A stretch of DNA of 64,000 bases, from assembly GCA_973895155.1 (NCBI GenBank), contig OZ316899.1, positions 1,387,573-1,451,572 of the forward strand, written 5' to 3'. Every line of letters begins with the position of its first letter. Position 1 is the first letter of the stretch. This DNA is from Marsupella aquatica (Eukaryota; Plantae; Marchantiophyta). Under the pieces are notes generated by a model. The model saw only the letters and a list, made by a program, of their open reading frames with translations. It was not told where the DNA came from and did no database searches. Positions 1-42,412 of this stretch are shown one piece after another. Made by a program: the position numbers and the translations under genes.

Positions 1-965
1 TGGCTTAGCAATGTTGAGCCTTTCCATGATGGGGGATCGGCTCTTTCCAATCACAACCCAGTACTGTTGAATGTAAGGCTCTCCGGATTGACAAAGACTG
101 AGGAGAGAGGAAAAGTAAGGCTTTTTATGGCTAACCCAGCTTTGCTGCGGAGAAGGGAGGATATGCAACTACCGGAAGAAGCCTGGAGCATGGGACAAGG
201 GAACTTTGAGGACCCTGGTCTTTGTTTTGCCAAAGGAAGCTGGAAATTGCATCAAACACTCAAGGAGATACAAGCCAAACCAAGAACAATTGAGGTGGAG
301 ATGGCTTTTCAGAGAGCTCAGCTGTTGGCTCTTACAATAGCCATTCTAGAAAACCATTTAGAGGAGGATATTGTTGGGTTCATGGATGCTGAAGACACGG
401 TGCATGCTTTGAGTTGGAGGAAACATACAAGAGGTTGCAGTCTAGCCCAAATCAAGCGGTTAGGTGAAGGACAAGAATCAACAAAAAAAATCTTTGCCAC
501 TGTGAAAGCCAAAAGATCTTGAGAGGTCATGACTTCCTTGAGTAGGGAGGATGGGAGTACTATATTTGACCCTAGTAGGATTTTGAAGGAGGTGGAAGCT
601 TTTTGTGAAGCGTTGTACAATCCTATCTGAAATGGAGACGGAAGGGAGACAAGTAACTAGAGCTAGACTGCTTGGCAACACAAGTTTTGCAATTTCTGGA
701 GCTGAGATTTTAAAGATGGAGAAGCTCCCTTCATGCCATGAGGTGAAGGATGTGTTGTGGCTCCTGCCTTGTGACAAAACACCAAGGCCTGATGGCATGA
801 CAACTGAGGTCTTTAGAGCATGCTGGGGTTTTCTTGGTCAGGATTTGGTGGATATGATACAAGGGTTCTAGCTTATGGATGCCCTTGATTTTGGGATTTG
901 TGAAGTGATTGTTAAATTCATACCCAAGAAACCTGACAAATGCTTTTTAAAAGACTGGCGTCCAT
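1..965 (+). mobile_element. L1-clade LINE ORF2 fragment (end of endonuclease to start of RT), decayed
   Basis: Translates to HDGGSALS-HNPV (end of APE endonuclease), then ..DKTPRPDGMTTEVFRACWGFLGQDL.. and KDWRP, the typical pre-RT linker of plant LINEs. Stops and frameshifts present; cut at 965 by a TG-starting LTR. Confidence 0.85.
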
Positions 966-3900
966 TGTGAGCCGCTCAATTAGTGGGTTAAATTAGTTTT
1001 AGGTTAGATTTTTTCTTTTTTGTTCTAAGTAAGCATATTATGCCTATAAATGAGTGGGAAGTAGAAGTGAAACTGAAGTCAACTCTCTTCAGTAAAACAG
1101 AATAAGAAAGTTTCATTAGTTTAAACCATGGTTAACTTAACAGTGGATTAGTGGATTAGATAGGTAATCAGATCCTTAGAGTTTGTAATTTAGGCTGAGA
1201 TTTTTTCTGAAGGTTCTAGGCAGGCCCTGGAGAACCCTTGTAAAAGAGCAAGTCATTTCGACCGTTCAATTAGAAGCTATTTACAGTGGAACAAAACTTT
1301 AAATAGACAACTTGCAGGACCTAGGGAAAATAGCCATAGAGCAAAAAATGTATTTTGAGGCTAGCCATGGTGTTACTATACCTAACACTATCCCTTAGAA
1401 TTATTAAACCTAGTTTTGGACTTATAGATACTTTTTGGGAGTGGTCCGAATTCTGTAAAAGTAGCTATGAATTATGACGGATTGCAGACTTTGAACAATT
1501 ATAGAAAAGCCAAGTTTAGTTATATATCAATTCTAAGAATTGTTTTAGGAAGCCCTAGGGCTAGGAAAGCCAGGAGTGTGTTCATAATAGTTTTTTTTCC
1601 TTATGAGTGAATTTTGAGCTATAAGTGAAGACGGCTAATGTTAAATGCCATAAGTAGCACTTAAAGGGAGACTTAAAGGGAGGAATGTTCTTTGTGCATA
1701 CAAAAGGGTAATTCAGCTGCGTAGAGAAACGTGGTGGACTCATTTACATCTGTAAAGGGAAGGGTTACAATGTAAAAGAGCTAGCTAAGGCCAGGTGTCG
1801 AGCCCAGAATTCAATAGAGCAAAAATCAAAGTGAAATTGAAGGGAGAATGGAGCTCAACGCTGCAGTTGAATGGAGAGCCAATACTCCACCAAATCAAGT
1901 AAGAAGAATTGGGCTGGAATGCTGGGCTCAAGGAGAATCAGAAGACCTGAACTAGAAGAGGAAATTCTGGAGCATGAATTAAAGGAGGAGATCGAAGGGA
2001 AAGCAAAGGCTGGAAGGGAAATTAATAGAGAAGATTGAAATTTCTGAATCAGAGAGAATATTTTACAGAAAGGAGAAGTCATTGACTGCTAACAAGGGGG
2101 CTCTTCAGGCAAAATCAACTTGCACCTTCTATAGGGGAACTTCGAGGTGCAGCAGTGGACAGCTAGAAGACCATTTCCTCAGCTAGGGTGATTGACAAGA
2201 AATCTGACCTGTGGCCCCTAACTTCAGGAATTGAATGCAGGATTAGTATCAAGTCCATAGAGATATTTCTGAAATTAGAATGGTTGCTCTTTGGACTCAA
2301 TTATTGAATGCAGGATTAGTATCAAGTCCATAGAGATATTTCTGAAATTAGAATGGCTGCTCTTTGGACTCGCAAATTGAATGCTACCAAGGTCAACCGA
2401 CAATCGAGAGAAGAACACATGGAAGGGAGATAGTTTTTGTGAGAATGGAGGGCTGGTATGAACAGAAGCACCAGCCAGACTTCCTTCAAATAAGCCACAA
2501 TCCCTTCAAACAAGTTCAGTTCTCTAAGTCCTAGCTTAGTTCTCTCCTTGCTCCAAACTGAATCAGGCAGTTGACTCTACCATAGATGGGAAGCATTCAT
2601 TCTCCTATTTCCATGAGTTCTTTCTCTCCGTTCACCCATGCACTTACTGTCAAGACCAGGGCTTATATTTCACAGGAGTACTGGGCCTTTACGTTTGTAG
2701 TCTCACGGGGTTACTATTTGGCTTTGTACACCTGAGTTTACACATGCAGGGTCAGGTAAACCGAGTTTACACCAGTAACTAAGCCTTGAGATAAGGCTGA
2801 CCCTAGTTTAAAGTGACGATATCGATGGGTTCTGCTGAAACCTGAATAACTCGCTTAGTTTAGACTCAATCGGAGTACTTTTAAATACATTGGAAAGCTA
2901 TCGACGGTGGCTAGAGGCTGGCACAAGCTAGGAGGATTGGGAGTTCACTAAGATTCTCTTGGAAGTCAGGTTGTATAACAGTTTGATATTGCCAGCTACT
3001 TGAGAGGTTTCGATCGTGGTAAGGCTCTAAAAGGAGGTCAAGTGGGACTACAATCAAAGTGCATGGCTGATCCTAGAGTTCCTGATCCAAGAGGGCTGCC
3101 TGATCAGCATTTTCCTCCCCTGGTCCACAAGGCTAAGTTCACCTTGTGGAGTAAGCATGGGAGAGCAAATGCCGACCCCGACATTTGGCTGGCCCAATAC
3201 CTACTTGCTCAAAGGTGGACAAGAGGGGCAGAAGTTCAAATCTGAGGGCTTTCACCAAGGTGTACCTCAAGCATTTCAGAGAGGACAACCAGATTACCAA
3301 GCCACTAACCAGTACGGTAAGGAGGTACCATGCTTGGGTCATTCGCAAGGCCCTAATCGGATGGGTGAGGCTTGGAGAAGGGCTCTTTCATGTCAAGGGG
3401 ACCTAGGCTGGTTCTGGAGTCCAGGAATAAGGAGGGTAAGGAGTGGAGTCCTTAAAGCCAACATGGAGGGTACCTAAGGACCTGAGTTACATGGAGACTT
3501 TGGAGGAACTTGGAGGGCCATTGGAAGTTGATCCCTCTACTATTTTTAGAGCTATTTGGTAGATAGGGATGACTGTACTTTGGAGGCTGACTTAGTCCCT
3601 GATTTGGAGGGATAGGACAGCCAAGTCAGGAGGTGAGGTGGACCTGAATGAAGGGCTAAAATCAAGGAGTTGATTTAGGCTTTCAAAAGGCCACCAACTA
3701 GCTCATTAGTTAGGTAAGACAAACAAGTGAGTTAGTGAGATAGTTAGGAGGATAAGTAAGGATCTTTGACCCCCTTGAAAGGTGGGCTGGTCTTTTTTTA
3801 GTGGTAAGTCACTTGCTGGTCTTTGGGGTGGTTTTGGACTTTGTGATGAGTTGAAGCCAAGCAAGGAGTACTTAAGTTGGTGTGAGTTACTTTGTGTGGG

Positions 3901-4017
3901 TCCAAGTATGGAGAATCAAGGAGTAGCACTAAGAGACCTTAGGGGAACTAAGGTAGATGTTCTAGGGGTACTAGAACTCAAGTGTATGCCTTGAGGCTTG
4001 AAAGGACCATAGAATGG
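966..4017 (+). mobile_element. Long LTR A (Gypsy type), partial; interrupted at 4017 by element D
   Basis: Begins TGTGAG exactly where the LINE frame stops. Shares scattered motifs with LTR C and the reverse complement of the B LTR (GGACCTAGGGAAAATAGC, TATCCCT-AGAA, AAAGGACCATA). No matching right end found in the window. Confidence 0.55.
2231..2384. repeat. 73-bp tandem duplication (2 copies plus a partial)
   Basis: TTGAATGCAGGATTAGTATCAAGTCCATAGAG.. recurs at 2231 and 2304, with a partial copy at 2377. Confidence 0.9.
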
Positions 4018-4161
4018 TGTGACAGTTGTCGTGCGCATACACATTTCTATACAATATACATTGTTTGTCACATACATCCAAACATATCACACTATCATAT
4101 CGCAAACACAAGAGAATGGAATACAAGTGGAGCTCATGTCCACATATGTCCAAAACCCACA
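4018..4161 (-). repeat. Putative 3' LTR of element D (~144 bp)
   Basis: TGTGAC...CCCACA adjacent to a polypurine tract. The partner LTR is absent, so the left boundary is unconfirmed. Confidence 0.55.
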
Positions 4162-4174
4162 ATCGCCCCCCTAG
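4162..4174 (-). other. Polypurine tract of element D
   Basis: Minus strand reads TAGGGGGGCGAT just before TGTGGGTTTTGG. Confidence 0.7.
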
Positions 4175-4334
4175 TCGGGAGTAAGGCCCCTAACTCTAGC
4201 TAGCCATGAGTTCTACAAGGTTGATATACACCTTTTCAGATGTGAAGATCAGGAGGCCGGGTGCAAGTGAGCCCCATCAATCACCTACCTGCAATCCATA
4301 TCTGCCAAAAGAACACAAATGATAACTAATCGGC

Positions 4335-4480
4335 TTCACCAACACGGGGGCCACAACCGTGATCCTCTATGAATCACCTGCAATGGTGGTGTCAAACACG
4401 ACATGTGTCATCCTCTAGAACACTTATCACAAATCAACATAGTAGCTGCTCCCTAAGCAGATCCATACAACATACACTTC
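4335..4480 (-). pseudogene. PHD zinc finger at the C-terminus of D integrase (decayed)
   Basis: Reads KCMLYGSA*GAATMLICDKCSRG*HMSCLTPPLQVIHRGSRLWPPC, matching the C4-H-C3 PHD spacing with substitutions and two stops. Confidence 0.75.
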
Positions 4481-6010
4481 AAGCAAGCACAAACATGTGC
4501 TAAGCTTGGATCCACGATACCATCAAAGTTTGGAAGATGACATGGTGCATAGTTGCGCACATGATCTTTCCAAACCATACCATCACGTCCCTCCAACATC
4601 AGGACACTAGAAGGGAACACTTTATGCACACGCAAAATGGTCTAACCTGCAATCACATCAAGGTTGTTGGTGCTGTCTGCTGCAAATAAACATTATCACC
4701 GGGATGAAATCATCAAATCTTTGCACGATAACCTCCTCCACAAATAGTGACATACTGCAAGTATCACAATGTTGGGCATGACTCTCTCAAATATCTTTGC
4801 CCTCTCTGAACAAACCTTGACCCAAACATTGGGATTATCCAAGTTTACAACCGATGCGATGTCATGATGAATAGCTGCTTGCAAATCTGGCTCTCTACCA
4901 TAGAGCAAGAAATAAGGTGAGAACGATGCAAGTGATGCTTGCCAACTAAAATGATAGCTAATAGCTAACCAAGGTAACTGAAGATCCCAATCTCCCAGAT
5001 GACCAACTTGCAAGCTATACTTGCACAACCCTCAGTCTCTTCACAGTTTGCACTACTCTCTCAGCCAATCCATATGCCTCAGGATGGTCACAAGAAGTAG
5101 TACGATGATCAATTAGAGCTTGCTCACACAAACTCTCAAACTCTCCACGGAACTCAGTTCCCTAATCAGTCAACACCTTAGCTGGTGCTCCAAAATGACT
5201 AAGTACATGATCCAAAAATGTGCTAGCAACTCCTCCACTAGCTTTATCTGGCAACGCCACTAGCTCAATCCACTTGGAGAAATACTCCACCATAACCAAA
5301 ACATAACAGTTATGTCATTGAGTGAGAGGCAATGGACCAGCAAAGTCCAAACTCCATCTATACCCCAAACCCATGATTGGCAATGGATGCAACTAGGGAG
5401 TGGAAGCATTAAATGATGCCCTCACTCGATCACATATCACACACTTAGCTATCAGTTGCTAGACATGATTGTGCATACCATGCCACCAATACTATGTTTG
5501 TAACAAGCTATAAGTGCATTTCACACCAAAGTGACCCAACTCCTCGTGCACATGTCGCACCAAATGTACTCATTGTGATGGTTTTGGTACCACCAATACC
5601 TTACCATCACGTAGTACTCTCAAAAGATGGCATGGTTTCTTTCCCATTGAAATCTCTTGGCTCTTTGCAGAACCCTGTCATGTTCCTTGGCATCAACACT
5701 ACCACCAATAGAACTAGTGTGCAGGTATTCCAACACTCCCTCATTGTTGTGAATATCCTGCTGTCCAACCACAACCTCACCAACATCCATATCTGTAGAC
5801 TCATCATCTACTTCATCCAATGAGATAGAGTTCACAGATCCACTGCATGCTGGAACCCAACAAAGGAAGGCGAATGCATACCATCCTGACACCATCTCCT
5901 TATCTGACTCATCATGCCATCTGGCTGCAATTTCATCCTCTTGACGGGTACAAGGATTACGGCTGAATCCATCTGCATCCAAGTTCACTTTTTGAGGCCT
6001 ATGCACAACC
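4480..6010 (-). pseudogene. Integrase of element D (fragmented)
   Basis: Fragments ..LAISYHFSWQASLASFSPYFLLYGREP.. and ..VLQRAKRFQWE.., downstream of RNase H. Confidence 0.8.
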
Positions 6011-7560
6011 TGGAAATCATACTCCTATAACAACAATGCCCATTGTGCAAGTCACCTTGTGAGCTTGTCAGACTTCATTAACCACTTGAGAAGCTTATGA
6101 TCAGTGATCAAGGTGAAAGGGTTACCAAACAAGTAGCAATAGAAGTGTGTCATAACCCACACTGCTGCCAACACACTCTCCCTCATAAGAGCTATACTTA
6201 GACTCTACTGAATTGTTTGATCTATTGGCATAAGTCACAACAAACTCATTTTCCTCATCATCTTTCAGAGTCAACATTGCTCAAACTCCTACGCCACTCC
6301 AATGGGGTATTTACAAACGATAGGAAACAACAAACAATAACAGGAAACAGAAACTGGTAATAGGAAAATGAATGTTAATATTTTTAGATTTTTTTTAGAT
6401 TTTTTTTTGCCAAATTTTTTTTGCTAGCACCCAAAGCTAGCCAAAAAATTATTGTTGACAACTTTTTTTTCAAAAATATGATTTTTTAGGAAATATTTTT
6501 ACATTGTCATTTTCTGGTAACAGTAAATTTTTGTTGATACTAGTAAACCTGTTTCATGTTTACTATCACGCATGTCATACCCACTCCAATCAGTGTGTAG
6601 CTGAAATGGTCTCCCTGAAATGGGTCTTCTCAAAATAGGGGATGATGCCAATCTTTCTTTCAACTCCCGAAAGGTATGCTCTTGGTCATCATCCCAAATC
6701 CACTCCTGATCCAACTTAGTGAGTATGGTTAAAGGTTTAGCAAGTTGGCTAAATCCTTTAACGTACCTCCAATAGTAGCTCGTCAATCCCAAGAATGCAT
6801 GAACTCTACTCATCTCAGTAGGATGAGGAATCTGTGTAAATGGCCTCCACCTTAGTCTGCTGCATACCCAATCCCCCTAGGTAGATAGTGTGACCCAAAT
6901 ACTCAATCTGGTCTTGGAAGAACTTACACTTGCTAGGAGTTTCAACCCATGTTCTCTCAATCTCTCCAACACAATCTGCAAGTGCTGTTGATGTTCTTCC
7001 ATAGTGGAAGAATAGACCAAAATGTCATCAATGTAACATTTGACAAAATCCAAACCTGTAAGAATTTGATCCATGACTCTTTGGAATTCAGCTAGTGCAT
7101 TCTTCAACCCAAATGGTAAAAACAACCACTGATACAAACGATCATTGCCATGCAAATCAATTCCCCATAATGTTATTTTGGACCTGTCAAAATGTCTAAT
7201 TGGAAGTTGATGGTCCCCTGCCCTTAGATCCAATGAACTAAAAACCTTTGCATGCCCCACAACGTCAAAGATCTCCTCAAATGTGGGCATGGCATATCGA
7301 TCAGATTTTGTCTAATGGTTAATAGGTCGGTAATCACCACACATGCGCCTATCCATGTACTTGCCATGCACATCCTTCTTGGCTGACATCATTGTGGTAG
7401 ATGCATAATCGGTACGAGATCTCCACCAAACCAGCCTCCAACAAATCTTGAGTTTTGTTCCAAATCAAAGCTCTCTCCATGTCACTGTAACGATATGGTC
7501 CGAAAGATTGGCGCATCACTAGCCAATTCAATCTAAATATCAGGGCCCTTCAATGTCCCA
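6010..7560 (-). pseudogene. RT and RNase H of element D (fragmented, MITE-interrupted)
   Basis: MPTFEEIFDVVGHAKVFSSLDLRAG..PFGLKNA..YIDDILVYS; AFLGLTSYY; FQLHTDWSG; PFTLITDHK. Confidence 0.9.
6304..6581. mobile_element. MITE, Mutator-like (278 bp)
   Basis: 9-bp TSD CACTCCAAT (6295-6303 and 6582-6590), imperfect TIRs GGGGTAT../..ATACC, AT-rich interior. Removal restores RNase H TDWSG|VGVGAML. Confidence 0.8.
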
Positions 7561-7929
7561 AAATCTTTCATGCTAAATGCAGAACAATTCCAATAACTCT
7601 TTAGAAATTGATGCATGCAACGTCTCTCCTCCCTTGTCAACTTAGGACCAATCTGTGGCTCCAAACTCTCCACCAAATCCCTGATATCTTTTTGTAGGGT
7701 AGCAAAGATAGTAGAATGATTGCTATTTAGCAATAGTTTGAGCAATCCTTTCTTGCTCAACAATCTCTCCGTTCTTGGCCAATCCTGCCATAGGTCCATG
7801 GACTATTTGCTTGCCCCCAACTGTGACCACTACTATCTCAGTAGGCCGCAAGCTCACCAATGGACGATCTATAACACTAGCAGAGCGCATCTGGAACTGC
7901 TCTACTACTCCCAAGCTGACAATCCAAGT

Positions 7930-8535
7930 CAAACAATTCAAATCCATGGCTTGGCCAAGAACCTGATGGCATGAACTCTCTGACACAGATGCAATAGCAA
8001 TTGTACCTTTGGAGAATCTCATGGCCCACTCTCTCTCATCAGCTGTGGGCTCTACTAACTGTCGTAGAGTTGTATCCCACACAAGTCTAGGACCATATGT
8101 GGTGAAAGCATACAAAGCAGAGTGGCTCACAAAAGTGGGTAATGCACAACGTGGGCGCCCAACCACATTGACGATTGCCAATGGAGATCTGTCAGGCTGG
8201 GTCACACCCTGTGAACGACGCCTTGGATCCAAAATATCATCCACTACCAAGGCTGGCAAGCAAGGAATGCTATCAAATGCTTGCTTCAACACCTCACCTG
8301 GTAACAAATTAGTCCACCACAAGCGTGGACGATGTGCACAAGAACCCACACATGCAACATCCAATAACACATCAAGTCCAATCCAAGACCTCACCTGATG
8401 AACACTGGCAACAATCCATTGACGATGATCACCCAAGAATGGCACATTCTCCAAAATGTAGGCCGGAGACTATGTCTGATGCAACTGAAGATGACGCAAC
8501 ATCCATAACATCTCCTAAAATAATGCAGATTGTGG
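7930..8535 (-). pseudogene. DNMT3-like C5 cytosine methyltransferase, C-terminal half (motifs VI, VIII, IX, X)
   Basis: YILENVP (VI), DVACVGSCAHRPRLWWTNL (VIII), EPTADEREWAMRFSKGT (IX), SCHQVLGQAMD (X). In ORF 7723..8454 plus its upstream in-frame extension, which contains two TAG stops. Confidence 0.85.
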
Positions 8536-9780
8536 TGTCGTATAGCAATAAGTATTAAAAGTGTAATTTCTCACTTAAAACCAAGGTTCTGATCCCTTAA
8601 AGAACATATTTTGGTATGAATTGAATAATTTTCATCATTCTGAGTGATGTAGAACTCATAGCTCTACACTTTTCTTACTTCTCAACAAAATAAAGTAAAC
8701 AAAATATAAAAGTAACTTAACTTCAGATTTACAGACTAGAAAGGAAATGATTCCAGTTTTGGAGACTCTAGTAAATTATTGCCACACCTTCAGAAAGGAC
8801 TTGGTCTCAATATAAACATGCCTAAAATCTCTCAACTCATCAATCTTTCTTTTGAAGATACAAAATTGTACAGAGATAAAGTTCTCAATCTGATAAACAA
8901 AGCAGCTTTCTGGTTGCAAATGTAATGATATGCCTTAAAATGCCGTCAACACGGTTTGACATCAGCATTGCGCAATTCAGTCAAACTCTAAGCCATATTC
9001 CAGAAATAAGCAACGGTACTAAATGCTTTGAGAATCCAATTTCACTTCTCATTTATCAACAACTACTCTTGAATTTGCTAGTGATTCTTGACTCTACAAG
9101 CAAGCCTAGCAGTGAATTCAATACGAGCCTCAGAAGTCTGTAACTGAATTCAATTACCACAGGAATTTCTGAGATTCAATCACAACTTCAAACAAATGCT
9201 GCTTTACTTCCATACAACGCACTCTCAACATGCCTTGTTATAATGGAAGGAGGAGGAACAATTTAGAATATCCAATTCTGAATACAGTGTTATCTCTGAC
9301 TCTCTCTCTGGTTCAAATGAGCATCCTACTCTGTCTTATAAGTGCTAAGGTCCTAAAATGAAGGAAATATGAAAAGCTATGCCTGTTGAGCTTGAACTAA
9401 GTATGAGGAAAGTACAACATAAGTACTTAGAGGTCGGGAAAATACTACTATATTGGTAATCTATTTCGAAAGCTAAATCTAAGTATCGGAAAATGAGGGA
9501 TGCTTCTAAAAGCGTCGTGTGTGGATGGACGCTTCTAAGCGTCGAGTCAGAGTGGACGCTTTTGAAAGCATCGTGAGTTAAAGTACTCGGGAATAGTCAA
9601 CGCTACTGAAAGCGTCAAGGGTGAATCACGGGGTAAGAGCGGACGCTTCTATAAGCGTCGGTCAAGAAATGGTCGATGAGGGCAGTCGCTTCTGTTTAGC
9701 GTCCAGAATAGAACAAATGCTTGAAAAATGTCAAAAATAAATCATCTTCCAACAAAAATGGTAGAGACCGCCATTCCACA
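8536..9780 (-). repeat. 3' LTR of element E
   Basis: TGTCGTATAG...CATTCCACA; direct repeat of 22970-24173 with substitutions and small indels. Confidence 0.95.
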
Positions 9781-9796
9781 TAGCCCTCCACTTAAA
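9781..9796 (-). other. Polypurine tract of element E
   Basis: Minus strand TTTAAGTGGAGGGCTA abutting the LTR. Confidence 0.85.
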
Positions 9797-9856
9797 TTTT
9801 GCCGTGTCCGCACAAGACAACCACGCTTTGATTAAGGACCAGTGTTGGGTTCTTCA

Positions 9857-10225
9857 TCAAAAATCTTCTGGCTTGGGAATCCAAGTGGTACTCAAGACCA
9901 TTGATGGAATATGGCTGTCATTGGGGTTCACAATATAAAAATCGAGGTCATAAAATTCTTCTCCAATATGTAATGACACTTGTTCTACTCTACCCCAAAG
10001 TTGAATTAATCGTCCATCGATTGAGATTTGAGCACCTATGGGCTGAACGTGTTGGCAAACTAATTGATGAAACAGTCTGTGGGACAGTAAATTTATTCCA
10101 GAGCCTGGGTCAATAACAAAGTGCTGAATAGTGTGTCCTTCCAATTTAATCTCCCCTTCAAGAGAATACTGAAATGCGCGGGAGAGAGAATCACAACAAT
10201 CCATAGTAGCTTTTACGGTCCACAT
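9857..10225 (-). CDS. Second retropepsin-like aspartic protease ORF in the accessory region of E
   Basis: FVIDPGSGINLL resembles the catalytic strand of the pol proteases in this window (VDGGSGVNI in B, VDGEASVNLI in E). C-terminal FYIV..VLSTTWI resembles YLVM..ILIGRPWL. Confidence 0.55.
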   Translation of the reverse strand: MWTVKATMDCCDSLSRAFQYSLEGEIKLEGHTIQHFVIDPGSGINLLSHRLFHQLVCQHVQPIGAQISIDGRLIQLWGRVEQVSLHIGEEFYDLDFYIVNPNDSHIPSMVLSTTWIPKPEDF

Positions 10226-10332
10226 GGTGACTCAAACAGAATAAGTGCTGCTCAGTACTTCAATCAGATCCGTTTATACTCCAGGGGATAAACGCCCTTT
10301 CAAATCTTATACATGAAGTGGTTACAAATCTG

Positions 10333-12810
10333 CTATCTGCTCAACAACCCTTGAGTGACAACGTCCGGCCATGAAGGAGGAGTAGGTAACCTTACTAGTC
10401 TCCTAAGTGACTTATACCCTTGAGCAGAAGAGTTCATAGCCTTATTCCGTATCAACTGTTCTCGTAGCTTAACAAGCTCTTTCTCGTACTTATGTGGAAC
10501 AACATACCCTTCATGGCAGACCCAAACAGAGTATTGGTATGGCCAAGGAAATTCAGGAGCAATTGGCGGAAAAGGGGTTTCAGTTTGGCGGAGCATATAC
10601 ACCCAACACCAAATTTCAAACTCCGAAAACTTATGTCGTCTCTCCTTGTCAATTGGAGGAACTGCCCTACCAGGTTTATATGTACAAATCAAAGAACAAA
10701 TGCTTGGATGATATGTACTTGCCAAAATCTGCTGTTGTTGAAATATACTCTCCATCTCTAAATGCCGAAAAGCTATCCGAAAATCTTTCTTCTCCCACTT
10801 ATGAATTGAAGCAAGGTTAGGTATAGGAATTAGGGATGGTAGTACCATTGTGTGCCGAAGTCTGGGAGGTACTCTGATAATACGAGGATCTTCGTCTTCC
10901 TCTCCATCGCTTGGAGCTCCTTTCCAACGAAAAATAATGTTTGGGTTCGAAGAAGGTATCACCGACTCCCTAGTAGGCCAACGTGATAGTACAACAGGAG
11001 ACAAAGATGCAGGAGGTGGAGAAGAATTCCCCATTGTTGTGTTGATTGGCTCCAGCTGCTCAAAATCCGGTGAATTTGCTTCATGAAAGATCTATCGATT
11101 TCTTACATGACGCAACCTTTTCCGAGGTCTTCGAGTATATGTCACTTGAAATTGCTCCGTAATAAGTGAACTCTCATCTCCAAGTGATATCCAAGTACCC
11201 TTATCTCTGCTTGAATCTAGTAAGATAGAAGCTGATGCAGAGCTAAATGCCAAATCAGGTGTTCCAGACAGAGGTATGGGTGGAGATACACTCTTGGTCT
11301 CAGGTAGCCCTAAATTGCTTGAAGGCCCAAGAGATGGAGTGGTTTGTTGACTGTGTTGAGACTCAAGCAATCTCTCCTCTGGAAGGTAAGCTGGAGAAAC
11401 CCAATCAACAGATGGGAGTGGAGGAGGTCCTTTTCTCGCCAATGCTTCTGCTAACTCCTCAGACATAATTAGAGCAACTGTTATCCTGGTTTCGGGGGTC
11501 GGCCACATAGGAAATGGCATGACAAAATTAGGTGGATTCGGTTGTTCAGCTACTCCTTCTACATCTACTATTTTGTCCTCTGAATCAGCCTTAAACAACT
11601 TTACGAGCTGCATGCATAATACCGCCGGAGGTTCCACTGATTGTTGTACAAGAGGAACCACATCTAGGCTTGGGGAGGGACTACGAGAATCTTCTGAATT
11701 ATACTCCTGTAAAGCTTTTAAAGCATTATTACTCACTTCCATGGGTGGTGAAGCAGGGTTCTGTGAAGTTTTATCATACCCATCCGCTACAGTAGTATAT
11801 TGTTGAGAAGGTTCTCCTGGTAAGCTTTCTTCATCCACATCCATCCTATCTTCGTCATTCGCTCTGAAAGCAGAATTGTCCTAATCAAGATCTTGATCCT
11901 CTGATGGGTGGGAAAGAATTGGCTCGTCTCTCCCGCCAACTGGTTCTCTTGTCTCTTTCAGTCTCTGAACTTCATTTACCAGCTCAGATTCTTCGCAAGT
12001 GAGTAGTTCGCATAACGCCACCAGTATTGAACTGGATCGGACTTCTCGTACTTCCGACAACTCATTTGCTTCACAGGTAGATGCGCTCCGATGGGTACGA
12101 TAGAAGACTTTCTCTAAGAGGAGCAGACATTTATGCTTGTGATAAATGTGAGCTAGATAGGGAGTCAAGTTGGTAAATCTCAACTTCCCAGCTTGCAACC
12201 TGCTACGAAAGTTCTTTACCTGGGTATGAATTACCCTATATAAGATCTTCGTCCAATTGATGGTCTGCTTCTGTTCTAATGAAGAGATAACGGTGGCAGC
12301 GAAAGAAAGAGTAATACGTGTCTGACTCTCTAGATAGAAAATTGGTGACAGAAATCGAAAAAGATGTTGCAAAGAGGTAACTAAACAGTCCGCGGTTACC
12401 CAACCATTTCGCCTCTTAAAGGATTCAGGAGCAAAGAAAGACTCTATATAAGCTCGGGGCTCTCCATCAATCCTCTGCAAATCCTCGCCCGTTGTTGGCG
12501 TCGAGTAGACTCCCGCTATGAGCCCTTCAGTCCAAACACTTGGACGCGAGCGGACACCGATTCCTTCCTCAGCATCTCACACACCTTGATTGATGAGGCT
12601 GAACTCGCACATCCTCCAAGGGAAACGAAGTAATTTCTTCAAGCCCATCAACGCAAGATTTGTCCTCAATTGTCGGCGGTCCACCATATTTGACGGGATA
12701 ATTGCGAGTATTGGTCGCATCGTAAGTTTGGACTCCACCATCGCGTCAATCGTGAAGGACGCTTCTCTAGCCGTTCCTAGAAGTGGACGCTTCTCGCAGC
12801 ATCCCGTCAA
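10333..12810 (-). pseudogene. Accessory ORF of E (~826 codons, three internal stops); N-terminal part resembles plant-mobile-domain/plant-transposon-protein-like ORFs
   Basis: ORFs 12577..12810, 11881..12480, 11092..11844 and 10333..11034 are in one frame, each separated only by a single TGA or TAG. Motifs MGLKKLLRFPW, TEGLIAGVYSTP, INWTKIL, LTPYLAHIY. Confidence 0.7.
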
Positions 12811-12961
12811 GACTAAGTTTTAGGGTGGATGCTTCTCGGGAGCGTCCAGTGCAAAAACAAAAATTCCGAACACTTGTAAAGGGGGAGGGAATGCTGATTC
12901 TAATTAAGTACAAACTACCTACCGCCCTCCACTTAAACTACGACCTGTCCCAGGTGAAACA

Positions 12962-14560
12962 CTAAATAGGAGATTCATGATATCGCTTAACCCGAAGTCC
13001 ATTGATTCGGGTGTCAAGTGGGTGACCGTCTAAGGTAGTCAAGGAAACCGAACCGTTAGCCCAGATTTGGGTAACTCGATAAGGACCAATCCAATGGGTA
13101 TGGAGTTTCCCAGGAAATAACATATAACGGGAATCAAAGACTAATGCTAAATCGCCAACATCTAAATTCACGACTCGCAGCTTTTGATCATAAACAAGCT
13201 TACGCTTGTTCTGAATTGTAGCTGTATGATCTAACGCTAAAAGTTGAACTTCTTCTAATTTGACAATATCAGAAAACCTATGTGGGAGACTAGCCGCTGG
13301 AGAGAGACGGTTGGATACCAAGAGTCGTTCTGTCGGGAAGGAGAATTCAATAGGAATAATACTGTCTAGGCCATAAGTCAGGTAGAAGGGAGTGTGAAGG
13401 GTTGTAATTTTCTCGGCAGTACGGTAAGCCCATAATGCAGAATGTAACTTCACATCCCAGTCTGTCTTGTGAGACTCCACCATCTTATTCAGGATCTTGC
13501 CCATAATGCCATTAGCTCTTTCCGTTAAGCCATTAGCTCTGGGGTTGTAAGGAGTAGTTTTACGATGCTTGATAAGATATGTGTCAGTAATTAACTCAAT
13601 AGTTGAGTTAAGAAAATGCAAACCCCTATCGCTTACCAACTCCAAAGGACACCCGAATCGAGTAATAATGTGCTCAAAGAGAAATGCAGCCGCTGTTGTA
13701 GCATCATTCTTGCGAGTAGCTTTAGCCTCCACCCATTTGGTGGCATAATCAGTGGCCAGAATAATGTATTTACTTCGGCTTTTCCGAGCTGCTGGTGAAA
13801 TTGGGCCAATAAAATCAATACCCCATTTCTCAAATGGTGCCAAAGGTAGGATGGGCGTAAGAGGCCATTTGGAACTAGCAGTGGGTTTGCCTATTCTTTG
13901 ACAGGGGTCACACGTCTTAATAAAGTTGTAAGTATCTCTATGCATGGTAGGCCACCAGTACCCAACATCCAAAATTTTCTTTACAGTAGTATTGACAGCA
14001 TAATGGCCACCTGTTTCTCCAGAATGTAAAGCTTCAATTACTTGTGGGAGTTCCCTGTTCTCCAGACATCGTCGCATCTTCTGATCAGGACCTTGTTTAA
14101 ACAAAGTGCCCTGAATGATAGTATAAGGCCCCACCTTATGTGCAAAAACAGCTCGTTCTTCCGCATTAAGGCCTTCAGGAAAACTACCATGAATCAACAT
14201 GTGCACAATATCGAAATACCGTGAAGACTCTCCTTCAATGTGCCACAAATGCTCATCTGGGAATTCATCAGAAAGATTATGCTGATTCTCTGGCCCGGGT
14301 AAGCGAGAGAAGAAATTGGCATTTTCATGATGCTTGCCAGGTCGTATCTGAACTTCATAATCGAATTCCTGGAGTAATAAAACCCATCGCGCTACTCGTC
14401 CTGAGAGATCCACTTGGTTAACCAAGTACTTCAAGGAATTATGATCAGTGTGAAATATCACCTGATACCCCAATAAATAGTGCCGAAACTTCTTGCAAGC
14501 AAACACAATAGCAAGAGCTTCACGTTCAGTGACTGAGTAATTTTTCTCTGTTGCACTCAT
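12962..14560 (-). CDS. pol: RNase H C-terminus plus integrase of E (532-aa open frame)
   Basis: HTDHNSLKY; H..GGHY..CDPC zinc-binding motif; WGIDFIGP, LVSDRG, NGLTERANG catalytic core; WIGPY. No chromodomain. Confidence 0.92.
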   Translation of the reverse strand: MSATEKNYSVTEREALAIVFACKKFRHYLLGYQVIFHTDHNSLKYLVNQVDLSGRVARWVLLLQEFDYEVQIRPGKHHENANFFSRLPGPENQHNLSDEFPDEHLWHIEGESSRYFDIVHMLIHGSFPEGLNAEERAVFAHKVGPYTIIQGTLFKQGPDQKMRRCLENRELPQVIEALHSGETGGHYAVNTTVKKILDVGYWWPTMHRDTYNFIKTCDPCQRIGKPTASSKWPLTPILPLAPFEKWGIDFIGPISPAARKSRSKYIILATDYATKWVEAKATRKNDATTAAAFLFEHIITRFGCPLELVSDRGLHFLNSTIELITDTYLIKHRKTTPYNPRANGLTERANGIMGKILNKMVESHKTDWDVKLHSALWAYRTAEKITTLHTPFYLTYGLDSIIPIEFSFPTERLLVSNRLSPAASLPHRFSDIVKLEEVQLLALDHTATIQNKRKLVYDQKLRVVNLDVGDLALVFDSRYMLFPGKLHTHWIGPYRVTQIWANGSVSLTTLDGHPLDTRINGLRVKRYHESPI

Positions 14561-15117
14561 TTGGCGACTAGCATAATAAATTGGGTGATTCCGATTCTCA
14601 GGATCTTTTTTACTAAGATTAGCACCAATACAGAAGGCAGAAGAATCAATGAAGACATGAAACTTCTTAGTCTAATCCGGGGGTGACAGAATAGGTGCAG
14701 AGATTAACTGATCTTTGAGCAACTGGAATGCCTGCTGTCGAACCTCATTCCACGCATATTCCACATCGTTTTTTAACAAGTGGGTTAAGGGAAAAGCAAT
14801 ATCAGCATGCTTATAAATAAATCGACGATAGTATCCCACATGCCCCAGGGAAAGCACAAAGTTGCTTCAAATCAGCTGGTGGTTGTAACTCCACAATCAC
14901 CCTAACTTTATCCTTATCAACTTCTATGCCGCATTGCGAAATAACATGGCCTAGCAAGATTCCCTCTTTCATGCCAATGAAACACTTTTCTAGGTGTAGA
15001 CAAAGCTGGGCCTCTCTGCACTTCCGAAATGTCTTTTCTAAATGCACCATGTGTTCAGCAGCCGATCCATAAACACAGAAGTCATCAATAAAAATCTCCA
15101 TGAAATGCTGCAAATAC
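14561..15117 (-). pseudogene. RT C-terminal half and connection of E
   Basis: YLQHFMEIFIDDFCVYG; GHVGYYRRFI; frameshifted. Confidence 0.9.
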
Positions 15118-17797
15118 TGTGACGCCGATGACATGGTCCTTATTCTATAATCTGAGTAACTAGGTTGCTGTATGCAAGGAGTAGCTATTGATACCGCATA
15201 ACAATTAGCAAGCTGGCAAGAATAAGGGCAATCATGGTGTTAAGAGTAGGGATAAAGGTATTTCAGCTTGAACACAACCAAGGCAGACACAGTTGAGGTA
15301 GTCACTATCAAGGCCACAAAGGAGAAGCTTGGGAAGAGAGGAGGAAGCGAGTCTCCATAACTGAATATGAAGTTGTGTGGTATGGTGATTGTTCTCATGA
15401 TAAAATTTGAATGTCTTGGGTGTGTAGCTTCATTTTGTTAGTTAGGTTAGTGGTTCATAGTCTAGTCTTAGAATGTTAGGGACATAAAAGGCTATGTCGC
15501 GCGTGGTTGGCAACCATATCTCGTTCAATATGTCACCAAATCCGGATCTGTAAAGAGCATTGGAAAGATATGGTCAAGGCGAGTAAAATCGATATAAAAC
15601 ACTCGGGAAACGGAGGTGTATTAAGGAAGATACGGCCTGATTAGTGTGACGGGTTAACTTGTGGCCGAAATTAGCGGATTCGGCTTCAGTTTCGGGTTAA
15701 CCCAAGCTCGGCCACGGCTTAGCTTAGGTAAGCACGACTTCAGCTTAGCTTAGGTAAGCACGGCTTCAGCTTATCTCAGGTAAGCACGGCTTCAGCTTAG
15801 CTCAAGTAAGCACAGCTTCAGCTTAGGCTTAACCCGGGTTTGGATTAGATTGATCCCGGGTTAGACTTAACTTGGGTTAGCCTAAACTCGGGCTCAGGTT
15901 AGCATAGGTAAGCTCGGGTTCGGGCTCAGCTTAGGTTAGCGGTTAGCGGATAGCGGGTAGCGGCCTAACCCGAGACCACGGGTTAGCTCTACTCGGGTTA
16001 GATAGGATAGCTAGGTTAGCCGAACTCGGGTTAGCTATGTAACTCGGGTTAGCGCAGCAGTGAGTACCCCCTCTCGGTTGCGGGGGCATAACTCTCTGTG
16101 TATTTGACCAAATTGGCTATAATTGACTTCGTTGGAAAGAGGAGCTCAAGCCACTTCCAACACTGCTATCCACCCAGCAAATGGTTGAATAGAGAAATCA
16201 GGAGAGGAGGCGCAAGCTCGCAAAAACCATGGAGGAGGGCCAAATCCGAAGTACATAGCCAATTCGAGATAGAAATAAAGTTGCGAGTTAGGGTTCAGTA
16301 GTTAGAGATAGTGGCGACTCTGTTAGGGCTGGGATGGGGCTCCAGCAGCGTAGTATCCACCCATTTGGGCTCAGTATGAGAGTATATAGAGCAGCCCCCG
16401 ATAGAGGCAGGGGGGGACTTCAGTTGTGTGATCTCACTTAGACTGAGCAGCAGGGAGGAGCTGTGTGCAAGCAAGGCTGGACTTGGATGCTGCGTGTTGG
16501 GGAGAGCTTGGTTGTGCTATTACTCAGGGAGTAATCAGCCAAGCTTCACAACTGCAACGGGTTGCTAGGTTTGCGAGTTGGATTGTGGCTCTTTCTAGTG
16601 GGCAGCACAACTGGGTTCTTTTCCCCCGATACAGAGCCTTGGTGATAGGTGATGTATTGGTGATTGTAAACTGTGGGGAGGATGTCAATTTGATTTGTGG
16701 TGAGCACGTTAGGGAGGCTGAGACACTGATTGAGGGGCAGCAGGAGGAGCATTTACAGTTCAGTCTGGCAAGGCTACGTGATCCATGGGGAGTCCCGACC
16801 TTTGTCTGGTGGAGAGCACTAAGGGATCTATGGCCAGAGCGGAGCTTGCAGGGCAAGCATGAGGCCGGGCCTCATTGCAGTCTGGGGTAGATCGCCGTTA
16901 GGCCTGGTACCAGCTTTGAAGTCGAGTCAACTGTGCATGCGTAACTTGACATTCGGAAATGGAGGTGTGAGATCTGTATGTGCCCCCAAGAATGAAGTGC
17001 AGTGAAGGAGGTTGAGTTCAGGATTGAGTTTGCAAGGCAAGTACGGGATTGGTTCGAGTCCAATCTGCCGTCGCAATCTGGATTGAGTCGGGCTCAGGTT
17101 CAGGATTGAGCTTGCATGACAAGCACGGGGCTTGCGGGGCAAGCACGTCGCAATCTGGAGGAGACAGCCTTTGGGCCTAGTGTTCGGATCAAGTGTTCTC
17201 AATGAACTATTGTGCACATCTTTGAATCTAATTGAGTTTTCCTCTTCGGGCTCATTTCTCTCATGGATGTGTGTGTGTGTGAGGCAATCTGAGTGTATGA
17301 TGGGACTAGCAGCGCCACTGAGAGGTGTACAGGGTGCATTGAAGCGGGCTGGGTGAGGACTGTCATAGCTCTAATTGCTGAGAGTGGAATGGCAGAGTGG
17401 TGGGGCAATGGCTTAGAAGCCCCTAAGCCGGGAATCAGTCAGGAGTCACTGGTTTATGGGTACATTCCGGCGGCGGAATAGAAACATACCTATGACAGTA
17501 AGCATACGTATAGACCTATGGGCACCGTAGCGCTAGGCCCTGTGTGTACGGGCCCGATATGAAGACCCCTTCTCACCAGAACTATCATGAGCACAGATCT
17601 GATCCCCAACCTTGGTTCCTTGGGATTGAGCTTGGGTGATGTGTGATAGAGTCTTGCTATGATAGTCTGGTGTTAAGGGCATAAATTGGTGTTTACCGGC
17701 CTTCACAACATCCCTTCGTGATCCTCGGGTACAAGGAGATGGTTTTGGCACCCATAGTGACATTTTTGGTGTTAAGACCCATGTCAATCGCGTGACA
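15118..17797. mobile_element. Solo LTR F (2680 bp) inserted in the RT of E
   Basis: TG..CA termini; TSD AATAC (15113-15117 and 17798-17802). Removal restores FQEYL|QHFMEIFIDD. No internal direct repeat or pol. Confidence 0.85.
15712..15826. repeat. 26-bp tandem array in F
   Basis: GCACGGCTTCAGCTTAGCTTAGGTAA-like units at 15732, 15758, 15784 and 15810, followed by degenerate CTCGGGTTAG repeats to ~16050. Confidence 0.85.
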
Positions 17798-18949
17798 AAT
17801 ACTCCTGAAAAATAATCATCATAATGCGTTGGAAGGTACCCGGGGCATTACACAGACCAAAAGGCATCATGGTAAATGCATACGTGCCCCAGTCAGTGGT
17901 GAACGTAGTCTTGTCACGGTCTTCCTTTTGTATGGACACCTGGTTATAACCAGAGTACCCATCTAAGAACTGTACAGCTCATGAAGAGCCACCGAATCAA
18001 GTACCAAATCGATAAATGACAAAGGATAATGATCTTTTCGAGTGGCAGCGTTCAGTTTCCGAAAGTCTTGACAAACTCAAATTTTTGTTTTACCATCTGG
18101 CCCTGGCTTCTTGGGAACAATGACTATTGGTGAGACCCATTCACTACTCAGGACCGGATAGACAAATCCAACATCGGTGAGCTTGTCTAGCTCTTCTTTG
18201 ACTAGAATGGAATATTTGGGGTTCAAACGGTACTGCCTCTGACGGACAGGTACTGCTCCTTCCATGAGATCAATGCGGTGTTCTCCCAAATGTGGATGGA
18301 TACCTTTTAAGTCGGAGTGACTCCAAGCAAAGACATCTTTATACTGGGTCAATAAACTGATATACTGTTCCCGCAGCTTCCCTTGGATGTGTTTACCAAT
18401 ATTCAAAAACTTGCCTGGCTCAATTTCAACCTTCTGACACGCCTTAGAATCCACAATTCCATCTGTGAGATTTGCCGGCTGGAGTTCAAGTTCGGATATT
18501 TCCGGTTCAGATGGCCCAGGGGTGGACGTCATTCCTATACCATGGCTAGGGCCTTCAGTAACATCCGTAACAGGAGGGCTGGCTACTGCTGAACAAGATT
18601 CCGATGTGGAAGTTAATTGCCAGGAGGGCCTGGTCGCGGTAATAGGGGTGTCTGACAGATAAACCTCCAAGTAACGAACTTCCTCAAATTCGAATTCTAG
18701 TGGCTGCAAGACAAGCGAAGAGGTCAAAAAATCCAAAGTGTACCCATCATCAGTTTGTGTTTCTCCAAAATGTGGTTCCGGAATCCAACTAACAATCACC
18801 TTAGGCTTCCCAAATGACAGTTCTTGGGATTGCCAATTGACTTGCACTTGAGCTTTGTATAACCAAGGCCGGCCCAACAGAACAGGAAAGCTGGGAAGGT
18901 ATTTTCGGATTAATGACCACATAGTCCAAAAGAAAAGGAACACCAGCAA
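17798..18949 (-). pseudogene. RT N-terminal half of E
   Basis: EHRIDLMEGAVPVRQRQYRLNP..SEWVSPIVIVPKK..FLDGYSGYNQV..MPFGLCNAPGTFQR; one stop, and a frameshift relative to gag-pro. Confidence 0.9.
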
Positions 18950-21674: not shown

Positions 21675-22945
21675 ACCTCATCCTCCAAACAGGTGTGGTA
21701 CTGAGAGCCAAGAAGCGTTCTCAGCGGACTTATTCGTGGTTGGCCCAGATTAGGAATCGATGCTGTCTCTCTAGTTCGGGAGGTGCGTCTCGCTTCCATT
21801 CTCGAGGTGTCCCCCAGCAGCTTTGTTCAACATCCCCTTCATAATTCCTTGCCTTGCTATCTCGCTCCTTCAGCTGGTACTTCCCTTAGTGCTCAGTCGA
21901 GATCTTAGGACCGCGTCACTCCAGGCGCGTCCTCACAGTTGAGACGCGGGGAGACACACTACAAGCGTCGTAACCCAAACTGGACGCTTTGAAGGCGTCC
22001 CGACTTGCGCATTGGTTCATCTCGGATTCCATCGGACGCTTCTGACGGCGCCCCCTAGCAAGTGGACGCTTCTCTCAGCGTCCCGTCTTAGGTGCGAACG
22101 CTTCTAAAAGCATCCCGCCTTTCGGAGTCTTATAGGCCGGATCTAGCCGGATGCTTCTGACGACGTCCCGTTGTGAATGCCTCCTTCCGGCAGCGTCCGC
22201 AAAAATAGGGCGTCTGAACCAATTGGCCGTTCCTATCTGCAGAAATCTCCTCTCTACGTGGCTCGCTAAGCCAGGACTTCAACTACTCATGCATCTATCT
22301 CCTTCTTAATCTTCTATGTAATTCATAGTGCATAATTCCTTCAGCTAACTCTCGGATGGAAATGACTAAATATCTCTCCTGGGTAATCCTACCATTCAGC
22401 CTCAATGTTACTAAATGTAAATTTTCATCTTCCCACCAGGTAATAGATAACCAATGTACGCCATTTCTACCTCTCAAGCTCAAAACCCAAGAGTTAACAT
22501 AATGATTCCTCAGATTCCTAATTCTTAATGTTCCTAAGGATTGGATAGGTGGCATCGTCTACACGAACGTGGTAACTCAGCAATTTACACCCATATGTCA
22601 TGCGCAATGTTATGGTAAATTTGCTTGCCACTTATGGTGCCTTTGTGACCTCCATTCCTGTTACTCCCTCCGAAGCGATCTGATGACCAACTGTTCCACC
22701 TAGCGGCACTTTCTCTGATGGGAGAAGAGTGTCTTCCGCTAAGTTGGGTCCAACAAATGCCTCCAGAGTTCTCAAGAGAGTTTCCGGGGCATTTTGGATA
22801 GAAGATGGTATCACCTCTAAGCGGAAGCTCTTCATCTCCTAACTTTGGTGATGACACTCTTCCACGATAGCAGAACGTGAATTTCCTTCACGTCTCAATC
22901 TCTCTAGCATTCACTGCCTATACGTCAATTCAATCTTAAATTTGT

Positions 22946-22963
22946 TCCCCGGCAGCGGCGCCA
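22946..22963 (-). other. Primer-binding site of E (tRNA-Asp type)
   Basis: TGGCGCCGCTGCCGGGGA, 6 nt from the 5' LTR; similar to the Athila-type tRNA-Asp PBS. Confidence 0.85.
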
Positions 22964-22969
22964 AAAAGA

Positions 22970-24173
22970 TGTCGTATAGCAATAAGTATTAAAAGTGTAA
23001 TTTCTCACTTAAAACCGAGGTTCTGATCCCTTAAAGAACGTATTTTGGTATGAATTGAATAATTTTCATCATTCTGAGTGATGTAGAACTCACAGCTCTA
23101 CACTTTTCTTACTTCTCAACAAAATAAAGTAAACAAAATATAAAAGTACTAGAAAGGAAATGATTCCAGTTTTGGAGACTCTAGTAAATTATTGCCACAC
23201 CTTCAGAAAGGACTTGGTCTCAATATAAACATGCCTAAAATCTCTCAACTCATCAATCTTTCTTCTGAAGATACAAAATTGTACAGAGATGAAGTTCTCA
23301 ATCTGATAAACAAAGCAGCTTTCTGGTTGCAAATGTAATGATATCAACGCGGATTGACATAAGCGTTGCGCAATTCAGTCAAACTCTAAGCCATATTCCA
23401 GAAACAAGCAACGGTACTGAATGCTCTGAGAATCCAATTTCACTTCTATCAACAACTACTCTTGAATTTGCTAGCGATTCTTGACTCTACAAGCAAGCCT
23501 AGCAGTGAATTCAATACGAGCCTCAGAAGTCTATAACTGAATTCAATTACCACAAGAATTTCTGAGATTCAATCACAACTTCAAACAAATGCTGCTTTAC
23601 TTCCATACAACGCACTCTCAACATGCCTTGTTATAATGGAAGGAGGAGGAACTATTAAGAATATCCAATTCTGAATACAGTGTTGCCTCTGACTCTCTCT
23701 CTGGTTCAAATGAGCATCCTACTCTGTCTTATAAGTGCTAAGGTCCTAAAATGAAGGAAATATGAAAAGCTATGCCTGTTGAACTTGAACTAAGTATGAG
23801 GAAAGTACAGCATAAGTACTTAGAGGTCGGGAAAATACTACTATATTGGTAATCTATTTCGAAAGCTAAATCTAAGTATCGGAAAATGAGGGACTCTTCT
23901 AAAAGCGTCGGGTGTGGATGGACGCATTTGAGCGTCGAGTCAGAGTGGACGCTTTTGAAAGCGTCGTGAGTTAAAGTACTCGGGAATAGTCGACGCTGCT
24001 GAAAGCGTCGAGGGTGAATCACCGGGTAAGAGCGGACGCTTCTATAAGTGTCGGTCAAGAAATGGTCGATGAGGGCAGTCGCTTCTGTTTAGCGTCCAGA
24101 TTAGAACAAATGCTTGAAAAATGTCGAAAATAAACCGTCTTCCAACAAAAATGGTAGAGACCGCCATTCCACA
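22970..24173 (-). repeat. 5' LTR of element E
   Basis: Direct repeat of 8536-9780, followed by TSD TGTGG. Confidence 0.95.
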
Positions 24174-42200: not shown

Positions 42201-42372
42201 GATAACTTTGCATAACTAAATTCCCTCTTACCTCTACTAAGCTTCCCTTCTTACTTAAGTGCCCTAAACCTAGCTACTCTGATAGCACTAAAACTTTTTC
42301 CCTAACTATTTCCTCTTCTAAACGAAAGAATGTCATGTTTCTCTACACTAGCTGACACTGAGCCATCCCACA
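39208..42372 (-). repeat. 3' LTR of B
   Basis: TGTCAAAC...CATCCCACA; contains a CAG/GCAGC-rich block (~40900-41460) and a 21-bp tandem (41519-41573). Confidence 0.97.
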
Positions 42373-42388: not shown

Positions 42389-42412
42389 TGTGCAGCGTCC
42401 CCGCAAACACAC

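Follow-up and report, generated by a model that had tools for sequence, protein, structure and literature searches.

Transposons that carry chromatin readers (chromodomain, PHD, or MBD) or DNA methyltransferases are known, and they have been discussed as exploiting host silencing. PHD fingers have already been recorded in retrotransposons, both in CR1 elements and in a survey of fusions that join PHD fingers and chromodomains to transposon domains. In Chlamydomonas, the LTR element REM1, reportedly described by Perez-Alegre in 2005, is said to possess a PHD finger. The REM1 finger is also cited in PMC8557442 and PMC6673714. Another Chlamydomonas element, Gypsy-7a_cRei, is given the domain order PROT, RT, RH, PHD, and INT in the legend to Fig. 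6 of PMC9940879, which lists no DNMT, and this order suggests that its PHD lies before the integrase. Chromoviruses carry a chromodomain at the C-terminus of their integrase (Gao et al. 2008, as cited in PMC6673714), and the LTR elements called EpiLTRs combine DAM, DNMT, and chromodomain (bioRxiv 10.64898/2026.05.21.726589).

In 2018, Gypsy elements that carry DNMT3 were reported from Klebsormidium under the name KnitGypsy-Dnmt3 (de Mendoza et al. 2018, PMC5890265), and a 2026 preprint calls these elements streptophyte Gypsy-DNMT3 (bioRxiv 10.64898/2026.05.21.726589). A PHD finger is mentioned neither in the main text nor in the available supplements of PMC5890265. Retrotransposons of green algae with PHD fingers, and Gypsy elements with DNMT3, have each been published, and in the literature searched we found no explicit statement that DNMT3 and PHD are paired in Gypsy elements and that this pairing is conserved into liverworts. 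We also considered Chlamyvir as a PHD-bearing parallel and dropped it because the literature gives this element a chromodomain.

The locus analyzed here lies in a 64-kb stretch of liverwort DNA, hereafter the window, and holds a dead element of this group. Like streptophyte Gypsy-DNMT3, the window element is a Ty3/Gypsy LTR element with a DNMT3-like methyltransferase in its polyprotein; it has the RT-RNase H-integrase order in pol, a DNMT3-like domain in the gag-pol region, and a position in the same DNMT/PHD clade of our tree. Its domains follow the order gag, protease, DNMT3-like methyltransferase, RT, RNase H, integrase, and PHD. Unlike most Gypsy-DNMT3 relatives, in which the DNMT lies between RNase H and integrase, members of the window's subclade have it after the protease and before RT, in many cases on a separate ORF1. 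In comparison with the Klebsormidium Gypsy-DNMT3 elements, the window element has a liverwort host, its copy is dead, and its closest relatives are found in Calypogeia and Marchantia. Our analysis adds that the published lineage has, almost throughout, a strictly conserved integrase-terminal PHD finger that by its sequence appears to be of the unmodified-H3 type, and that the lineage reaches liverworts, including the model Marchantia. The window copy is itself a functionless relic of a known family, and it exposes a reader-writer architecture that is family-wide. The coordinates of its parts are listed in Table 1.

Table 1. Parts of the decayed Gypsy-DNMT3 element, and of the insertion that splits it, in window coordinates
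Feature	Positions	Strand	Basis
Frame-ending stop, two codons past the last ligand	4336-4338	minus	Translation
PHD finger remnant, C4HC3 type	4342-4476	minus	Pfam PF00628; alignment to 18 intact relatives
In-frame stop at the aromatic position directly before the His ligand	4408-4410	minus	Relatives have W or Y
In-frame stop in the loop that links ligand pairs one and two	4453-4455	minus	Translation
Integrase C-terminal region (core end, SH3-like part, linker), in the frame of the finger	4477-5031	minus	tblastn with P0272/P0273; BLASTP
Integrase zinc-binding (H2C2) part and catalytic core, one frame off the tail	5036-5626	minus	tblastn with P0272 602-798, 64% identity
Reverse transcriptase and RNase H of the same pol, several frame changes	5641-7661	minus	Pfam; tblastn
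DNMT3-like methyltransferase, C-terminal part	7897-8535	minus	tblastn with L005 ORF1 1111-1323, 43% identity
Nested LTR retrotransposon, 15.6 kb, splitting the DNMT domain; not part of the host element	8536-24172	minus	
DNMT3-like domain, N-terminal part	24173-24505	minus	tblastn with L005 ORF1 1002-1112, 45% identity
Aspartic protease region of the same element	24940-25361	minus	tblastn with L005 ORF1 729-867

An earlier note on this DNA, made from its letters alone, had read a PHD pattern directly after the integrase, with single-site decay of the W and C codons. The minus frame that follows the integrase C-terminal region does give the pattern C-x2-(Y)-x11-C-x2-C-x4-H-x2-C-TPPL-x12-(W)-x2-C. 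When the 54-residue window peptide was written with X at its two internal stops, it matched PF00628 with 29.1 bits (E=1e-6), above the curated gathering cut-off of 24 bits. In a Pfam scan of the separate open pieces of the window, without this bridging, neither a PHD nor a DNMT match was returned. A column-by-column alignment with 18 intact relatives shows that the window copy keeps six of the eight zinc ligands (1, 3, 4, His, 5, and 8), the first at 4474-4476 and the eighth at 4342-4344. Ligand 2 has been replaced by Tyr and ligand 7 by Trp, the conserved Trp ahead of ligand 7 by Arg, and the conserved Pro by His. The copy does not have the complete C4HC3 set with canonical spacing and is thus a remnant, and it cannot work as a module because ligands have been lost and stops interrupt the frame. 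The window finger is non-functional.

The minus strand from 5031 down to the frame-ending stop is a single frame with no frameshift, and it runs through the end of the integrase core, an SH3-like C-terminal region, a short linker, and the finger. The claim that finger and integrase share a frame is borne out by single alignment segments. With tblastn, 5031-4342 aligns as one uninterrupted segment with residues 799-1037 of P0272, an intact ORF2 protein of 1039 residues (45% identity); the same region aligns with residues 788-1014 of P0273 (48% identity), and a single BLASTP segment joins integrase tail and finger to residues 368-607 of the Marchantia protein P0386 (56% identity, E=7e-85). Tail and finger are likewise colinear with 39 polyproteins (BLASTP, best E=4e-35). 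In the nearest relatives, the natural end of pol lies close to the place of the frame-ending stop: P0272 is aligned up to residue 1037, and the proteins P0166 and P0184 stop two to three residues beyond the last Cys. Within the integrase C-terminal region, further in-frame stops are found at 4696-4698, 4693-4695, and 4642-4644. The stretch 4342-4476 is therefore confirmed as the decayed C-terminal PHD finger of a Ty3/Gypsy integrase, in frame and at the very end of pol.

Copies of the stretch in public sequencing runs were compared by the letter differences observed at single places. Logan contigs cover the stretch with 80-99% likeness in four runs from two organisms, none of the runs being recorded as RNA. 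Each run holds from hundreds to about 1,500 pieces, and therefore the family is high-copy. Nearly all other copies have a different letter at ligand 2, at ligand 7, at the conserved Trp and Pro, and at the first stop (4455). Because of these differences, the damage to the finger is private to the window copy, and the intact relatives are canonical at the decayed codons. The Cys/His ligands, on whose persistence in other copies the earlier note had staked its reading, are kept by other copies and relatives.

The remainder of the dead element was laid out by tblastn with the intact two-ORF element at locus L005, whose ORF1 encodes gag-protease-DNMT and whose ORF2 is P0272 (RT-RNase H-integrase-PHD). 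Protease, the two halves of the DNMT, and RT-RNase H-integrase-PHD are all on the minus strand. Pfam matches on the pol pieces fall between 7311 and 5165 (RVT_1 at 2.2e-21, RT_RNaseH_2 at 2.2e-8, and rve on 5165-5314 at E=7.8e-6), and the RT and RNase H region corresponds to residues 22-598 of P0272 in colinear tblastn segments of alternating frame. The pol is colinear with P0273 and P0166 as well. There are at least six frame changes in the RT-to-PHD stretch (7661-4342). The protease of L005 ORF1 is a weak match to Asp_protease_2 at residues 774-859 (23.6 bits, under the 24.3 cut-off). The presence of a DNMT3-like domain in the same element, which the earlier note had also claimed, is upheld by the tblastn matches to L005 and by the library searches described below; the decayed DNMT piece of the window has no Pfam match. 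On each side of the nested insertion the DNMT alignment picks up at the adjoining residue. The direct repeats (LTRs) of the nested element, at 8536-9345 and 22970-23738, are 93-98% identical, and this element has its own RNase H-integrase ORF at 12965-14671. A blastn comparison of 1-4500 with 24000-64000 found no LTR pair for the PHD/DNMT element. Stops, lost ligands, pol frame changes, and the nested insertion show that this copy is dead.

A search with the DNMT piece in a representative library (1.84 billion cluster representatives) gave 632 matches, including 306 at E<=1e-10, and two liverworts gave the best of them, Calypogeia fissa at 56% identity and Marchantia polymorpha at 59%. Among proteins of at least 1,000 residues, 70 are ordered (RT-)DNMT-integrase-PHD, and their complete finger lies about 200 residues past the integrase core; a smaller group shares the window's order, with the DNMT ahead of RT. 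The integrase-PHD tail of P0166 found 19 matches, all with PF00628; the nearest are ORF2 proteins (RT-RNH-INT-PHD) that follow an ORF1 encoding gag-PR-DNMT. The closest intact relative of the window element is P0273 (60% identity), and a search with its integrase brought in 102 new proteins, 101 with the full finger pattern. Named hosts are Haematococcus, Volvox, Monoraphidium, Klebsormidium, Coleochaete, and Marchantia. The Coleochaete relative is a complete ORF from a transcriptome, and the Klebsormidium proteins P0218 and P0332 are among the PHD-tailed integrase relatives.

For the PF00628 search, which the earlier note had proposed for a family consensus, natural intact relatives were used in place of a consensus, and both these and the X-bridged window peptide match the family. 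The E values for relatives are 3.8e-8 for P0166, 2.4e-12 for P0184, 1.7e-9 for P0023, and 4.4e-9 for the Marchantia protein P0386. Alignment of 45 intact fingers showed no variation at any of the eight ligands, and D23 (after ligand 3), G28 (two residues before the His), L34, P42, and W45 are conserved in at least 90%.

To place the elements without reference to the finger itself, we left it out of an integrase tree of 79 rows, made with a quick IQ-TREE run. The DNMT/PHD elements form one clade with a long stem (SH-aLRT 99), and the window falls inside a clade of 11 rows (support 99) in which every member has a PHD. PHD-tailed integrases thus form one well-supported clade that extends from chlorophytes through charophytes to liverworts. 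Elements whose DNMT precedes RT make up a group (25 rows, support 99) that is nested among those whose DNMT follows RNase H and precedes the integrase. That both placements occur within one clade suggests either a move of the domain or a second capture.

Co-occurrence of PHD and DNMT across copies had been suggested as a check, and it turned out to be family-wide apart from one subclade. According to the architecture tables and the loci checked, the two domains occur together in nearly all full-length members, although counts of co-occurrence are biased because the protein sets were picked by DNMT or integrase similarity. The exceptions are the PHD-less members of the DNMT-before-RT group, namely Closterium and the group of the metagenomic protein P0032, which form a single nested clade (support 100). 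Secondary loss of the PHD is the simplest reading of this group. P0032 itself has the domain order of the window and ends 122 residues past the integrase core, 60 bases from the end of its contig. Because this subclade keeps the DNMT without the PHD, the pairing is not obligatory.

Several individual relatives are of separate interest. Marchantia polymorpha Mp_7g09570 (P0386), annotated as a "PHD-type domain" protein, is a chimeric gene model assembled from decayed parts of this family of transposons; it contains integrase fragments and a region of DNMT motif I, and its C-terminal PHD is intact. At the one Calypogeia copy examined (locus L003), the integrase tail has 47% identity and no recognizable finger follows the linker in any frame; at Marchantia locus L002 the integrase match is absent. 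Three metagenomic proteins have unusual arrangements. P0204 is RT-RNH-DNMT-INT-PHD-Chromo, that is, two readers and one writer, and the PHD stands ahead of the integrase in P0255 (gag-PR-Dam-RT-RNH-PHD-INT) and in P0259 (PR-RT-RNH-deoxynucleoside kinase-PHD-INT). The relatives P0300, P0193, and P0423 are filed under bacterial metagenome-assembled genomes (Synechococcales, Minisyncoccia, and Spirochaetia) and are probably mis-binned eukaryotic contigs.

Structural comparisons were made with the finger of P0166, a relative, rather than with the window copy. The AlphaFold model of this finger (pLDDT 90.8) has the interleaved zinc knuckles and two-stranded sheet of the PHD fold. In a Foldseek search against the PDB, it matched fingers of UHRF1, ATXR5, BAZ2A, and DPF with TM values of 0.8-0.9 and rmsd of 0.7-1.6 A, and it superposes on UHRF1, ATXR5 with H3, BAZ2A with an unmodified H3K4 peptide, DPF2/3, MOZ, BHC80, and ORC1b with unmodified H3. 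A profile of the 45 fingers matched 147 solved structures, and its best matches are KMT2C/D, CHD4, KDM5 PHD1, ATXR5, DPF3, WSTF, KAT6A/B, BAZ2A/B, BHC80, UHRF1, and AIRE. Among the best 60 of the 147 there is no classical H3K4me3 reader (BPTF, ING, or TAF3) and no ADD domain (DNMT3A, DNMT3L, or ATRX).

In the BPTF and ING2 structures, the Trp of the H3K4me3 cage sits two residues before the His ligand, and in this family that position is held by the near-invariant Gly. Because of this Gly and the best profile and structure matches, we infer by similarity that the family finger is one of those PHD fingers that bind the N-terminal tail of H3 in its unmodified state (H3K4me0). Subclass is an imperfect guide to specificity: UHRF1 recognizes R2, and the DPF fingers, as a tandem, recognize acylated K14. 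The family finger resembles BHC80, AIRE, BAZ2A, ATXR5, and KDM5 PHD1, with which it shares the PHD fold, and its best matches are to fingers solved with unmodified H3 peptides. For the DNMT domain of P0032, the nearest solved structures are DRM2 and DNMT3A/B, which supports the "DNMT3-like" label that the earlier note had applied.

Taken as a whole, the best explanation for the locus, and one that we consider quite probable, is a dead Gypsy-DNMT3 element of a family whose integrase carries a PHD finger that would guide integration through histones. The finger most likely stays on the integrase after pol is processed because it is the last module of pol and directly follows the integrase. It would then probably tether the integration complex to nucleosomes without H3K4 methylation. 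Such chromatin would be silent and free of promoters, and new copies would land away from active promoters. The finger would take the role that the chromodomain plays in chromoviruses, which similarly have a small histone-tail reader on the C-terminus of a Ty3/Gypsy integrase and, by analogy, presumably the same steering to silent chromatin. Unlike the chromovirus reader, the finger has a zinc-binding PHD fold, and its mark is probably unmodified H3K4 rather than H3K9me; the chromodomain family PF00385 has no match on the integrase-tail pieces of the window. REM1 and Gypsy-7a_cRei also pair a green-lineage Gypsy pol with a PHD as an accessory chromatin reader, and, as far as the figure legend for Gypsy-7a_cRei goes, the window element differs from the latter in carrying a DNMT3-like domain and in having its PHD at the end of the integrase.

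The DNMT3-like enzyme that the element encodes may, for its part, act on the DNA of that chromatin compartment. Where the DNMT follows the protease and precedes RT, as in the window, processing would probably release reader and writer as separate proteins; with RT and RNase H between them, any coupling would be indirect. In the commoner order, with the DNMT directly before the integrase, a fused DNMT-IN-PHD protein is conceivable. EpiLTRs are comparable in that one retrotransposon combines a DNA methyltransferase with a chromatin reader domain. They differ in that their DNMT is sister to DNMT4 and their reader is a chromodomain, whereas here a DNMT3/DRM-like DNMT is found with a PHD. The natural intact relatives provide sequences for peptide-binding and insertion-site tests of a testable hypothesis, namely that these elements insert into H3K4-unmethylated chromatin and that their DNMT3-like enzyme acts in the same compartment.

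A stronger proposal, which we advance tentatively and regard as somewhat unlikely, is that, across its range from chlorophytes to liverworts, the DNMT3-Gypsy clade as a whole amounts to a selfish reader-writer module maintained as one selected unit, in which the PHD would pick H3K4me0 chromatin and the DNMT3-like enzyme would methylate there. Out of separate parts, the transposon would in effect have rebuilt the logic by which host DNMT3 combines ADD with a methyltransferase, and the selected pairing would have been kept through both placements of the DNMT, whether ahead of RT or after RNase H and before the integrase. The likeness to host DNMT3 would lie in this logic, an unmethylated-H3K4 reader paired with a de novo methyltransferase. 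Unlike the ADD of DNMT3, the finger has no GATA-like part, and the reader is on the integrase rather than on the methyltransferase. Since the sequence of the finger is not ADD-like, the comparison with ADD goes no further than analogy.

Other explanations have to be weighed against these proposals. A copy as heavily decayed as this one, with two ligands gone and two stops inside the finger, might hold a Cys/His pattern that is a chance product of decay or a fragment of an adjacent host PHD gene. We regard this as having a practically negligible chance of being correct. The core pattern C..C-x(8-25)-C..C-x4-H..C has a single match in the six frames of the window, at the finger, against 0.01 expected on average from mononucleotide shuffles of the window (the regex match begins at a neighboring Cys, in CLKC, instead of at the true ligand pair, and the correct register is that of the alignment). 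The Pfam score above the cut-off and the shared position of the finger in over 100 relatives speak against it as well, and both the chance and the host-gene versions are refuted by the colinear, ungapped-frame alignments that pass through integrase tail and finger and join them to intact polyproteins up to their last residues. A finger that is real and family-wide could nevertheless serve a purpose other than target-site choice: it could regulate or recruit the DNMT, as ADD does, bind a non-histone partner of the host, or read H3R2, H3K14ac, or H3K4me3. The DNMT directly upstream of the integrase in the 70 proteins of the commoner order, where a single protein is conceivable, would fit such a role, as would the presence of UHRF1 and DPF fingers, readers of features other than K4me0, among the top structural matches. 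Furthermore, P0204 adds a chromodomain after its PHD, as though the PHD alone gave no targeting. We nonetheless judge another function of this kind to be unlikely, given that the finger occupies the site of the targeting chromodomain of chromoviruses, that ADD is absent from the best 60 profile-matched structures, and that the window's subclade has RT and RNase H between DNMT and integrase.

The pairing of the two domains, as distinct from the finger itself, is where the proposal of a selected module meets a competitor. The PHD may have been gained independently of the DNMT, and their co-occurrence may be an accident of one successful lineage rather than the mark of a selected pair. Sister lineages without a DNMT have a PHD between RNase H and integrase beside other captured enzymes (Dam in P0255 and deoxynucleoside kinase in P0259), Chlamydomonas transposons are reported to carry PHD fingers commonly as accessory domains (PMC8557442, PMC9940879), and one DNMT-bearing subclade has lost its PHD. 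An accident sits less well with ligands that are invariant and with two domains that are kept in nearly all full-length members from chlorophytes to liverworts and with the DNMT in two positions. We hold independent gain to be possible but rather doubtful.

Some members of the larger family have a longer pol. In P0122, P0277-P0279, and P0283, which have the DNMT between RNase H and integrase, pol runs some 300 residues past the PHD. These C-terminal extensions gave no family match in the searches made, and their last 300-350 residues look alike, for example in a "LLVHDP..LL" motif.

The window also includes features outside the PHD/DNMT element. A 661-aa ORF on the minus strand (60458-62443), in a region of 54% G+C, has no Pfam match at E<=0.1. 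An uninterrupted gag-pol ORF of 2022 aa (42413-48481, minus) encodes capsid, zinc knuckle, RT, RNase H, and integrase, and it gives neither a PHD nor a DNMT match. This ORF lies between 300-nt direct repeats (39208-39507 and 48536-48835) that are 100% identical and that bound an apparently young Gypsy element at 39208-48835.
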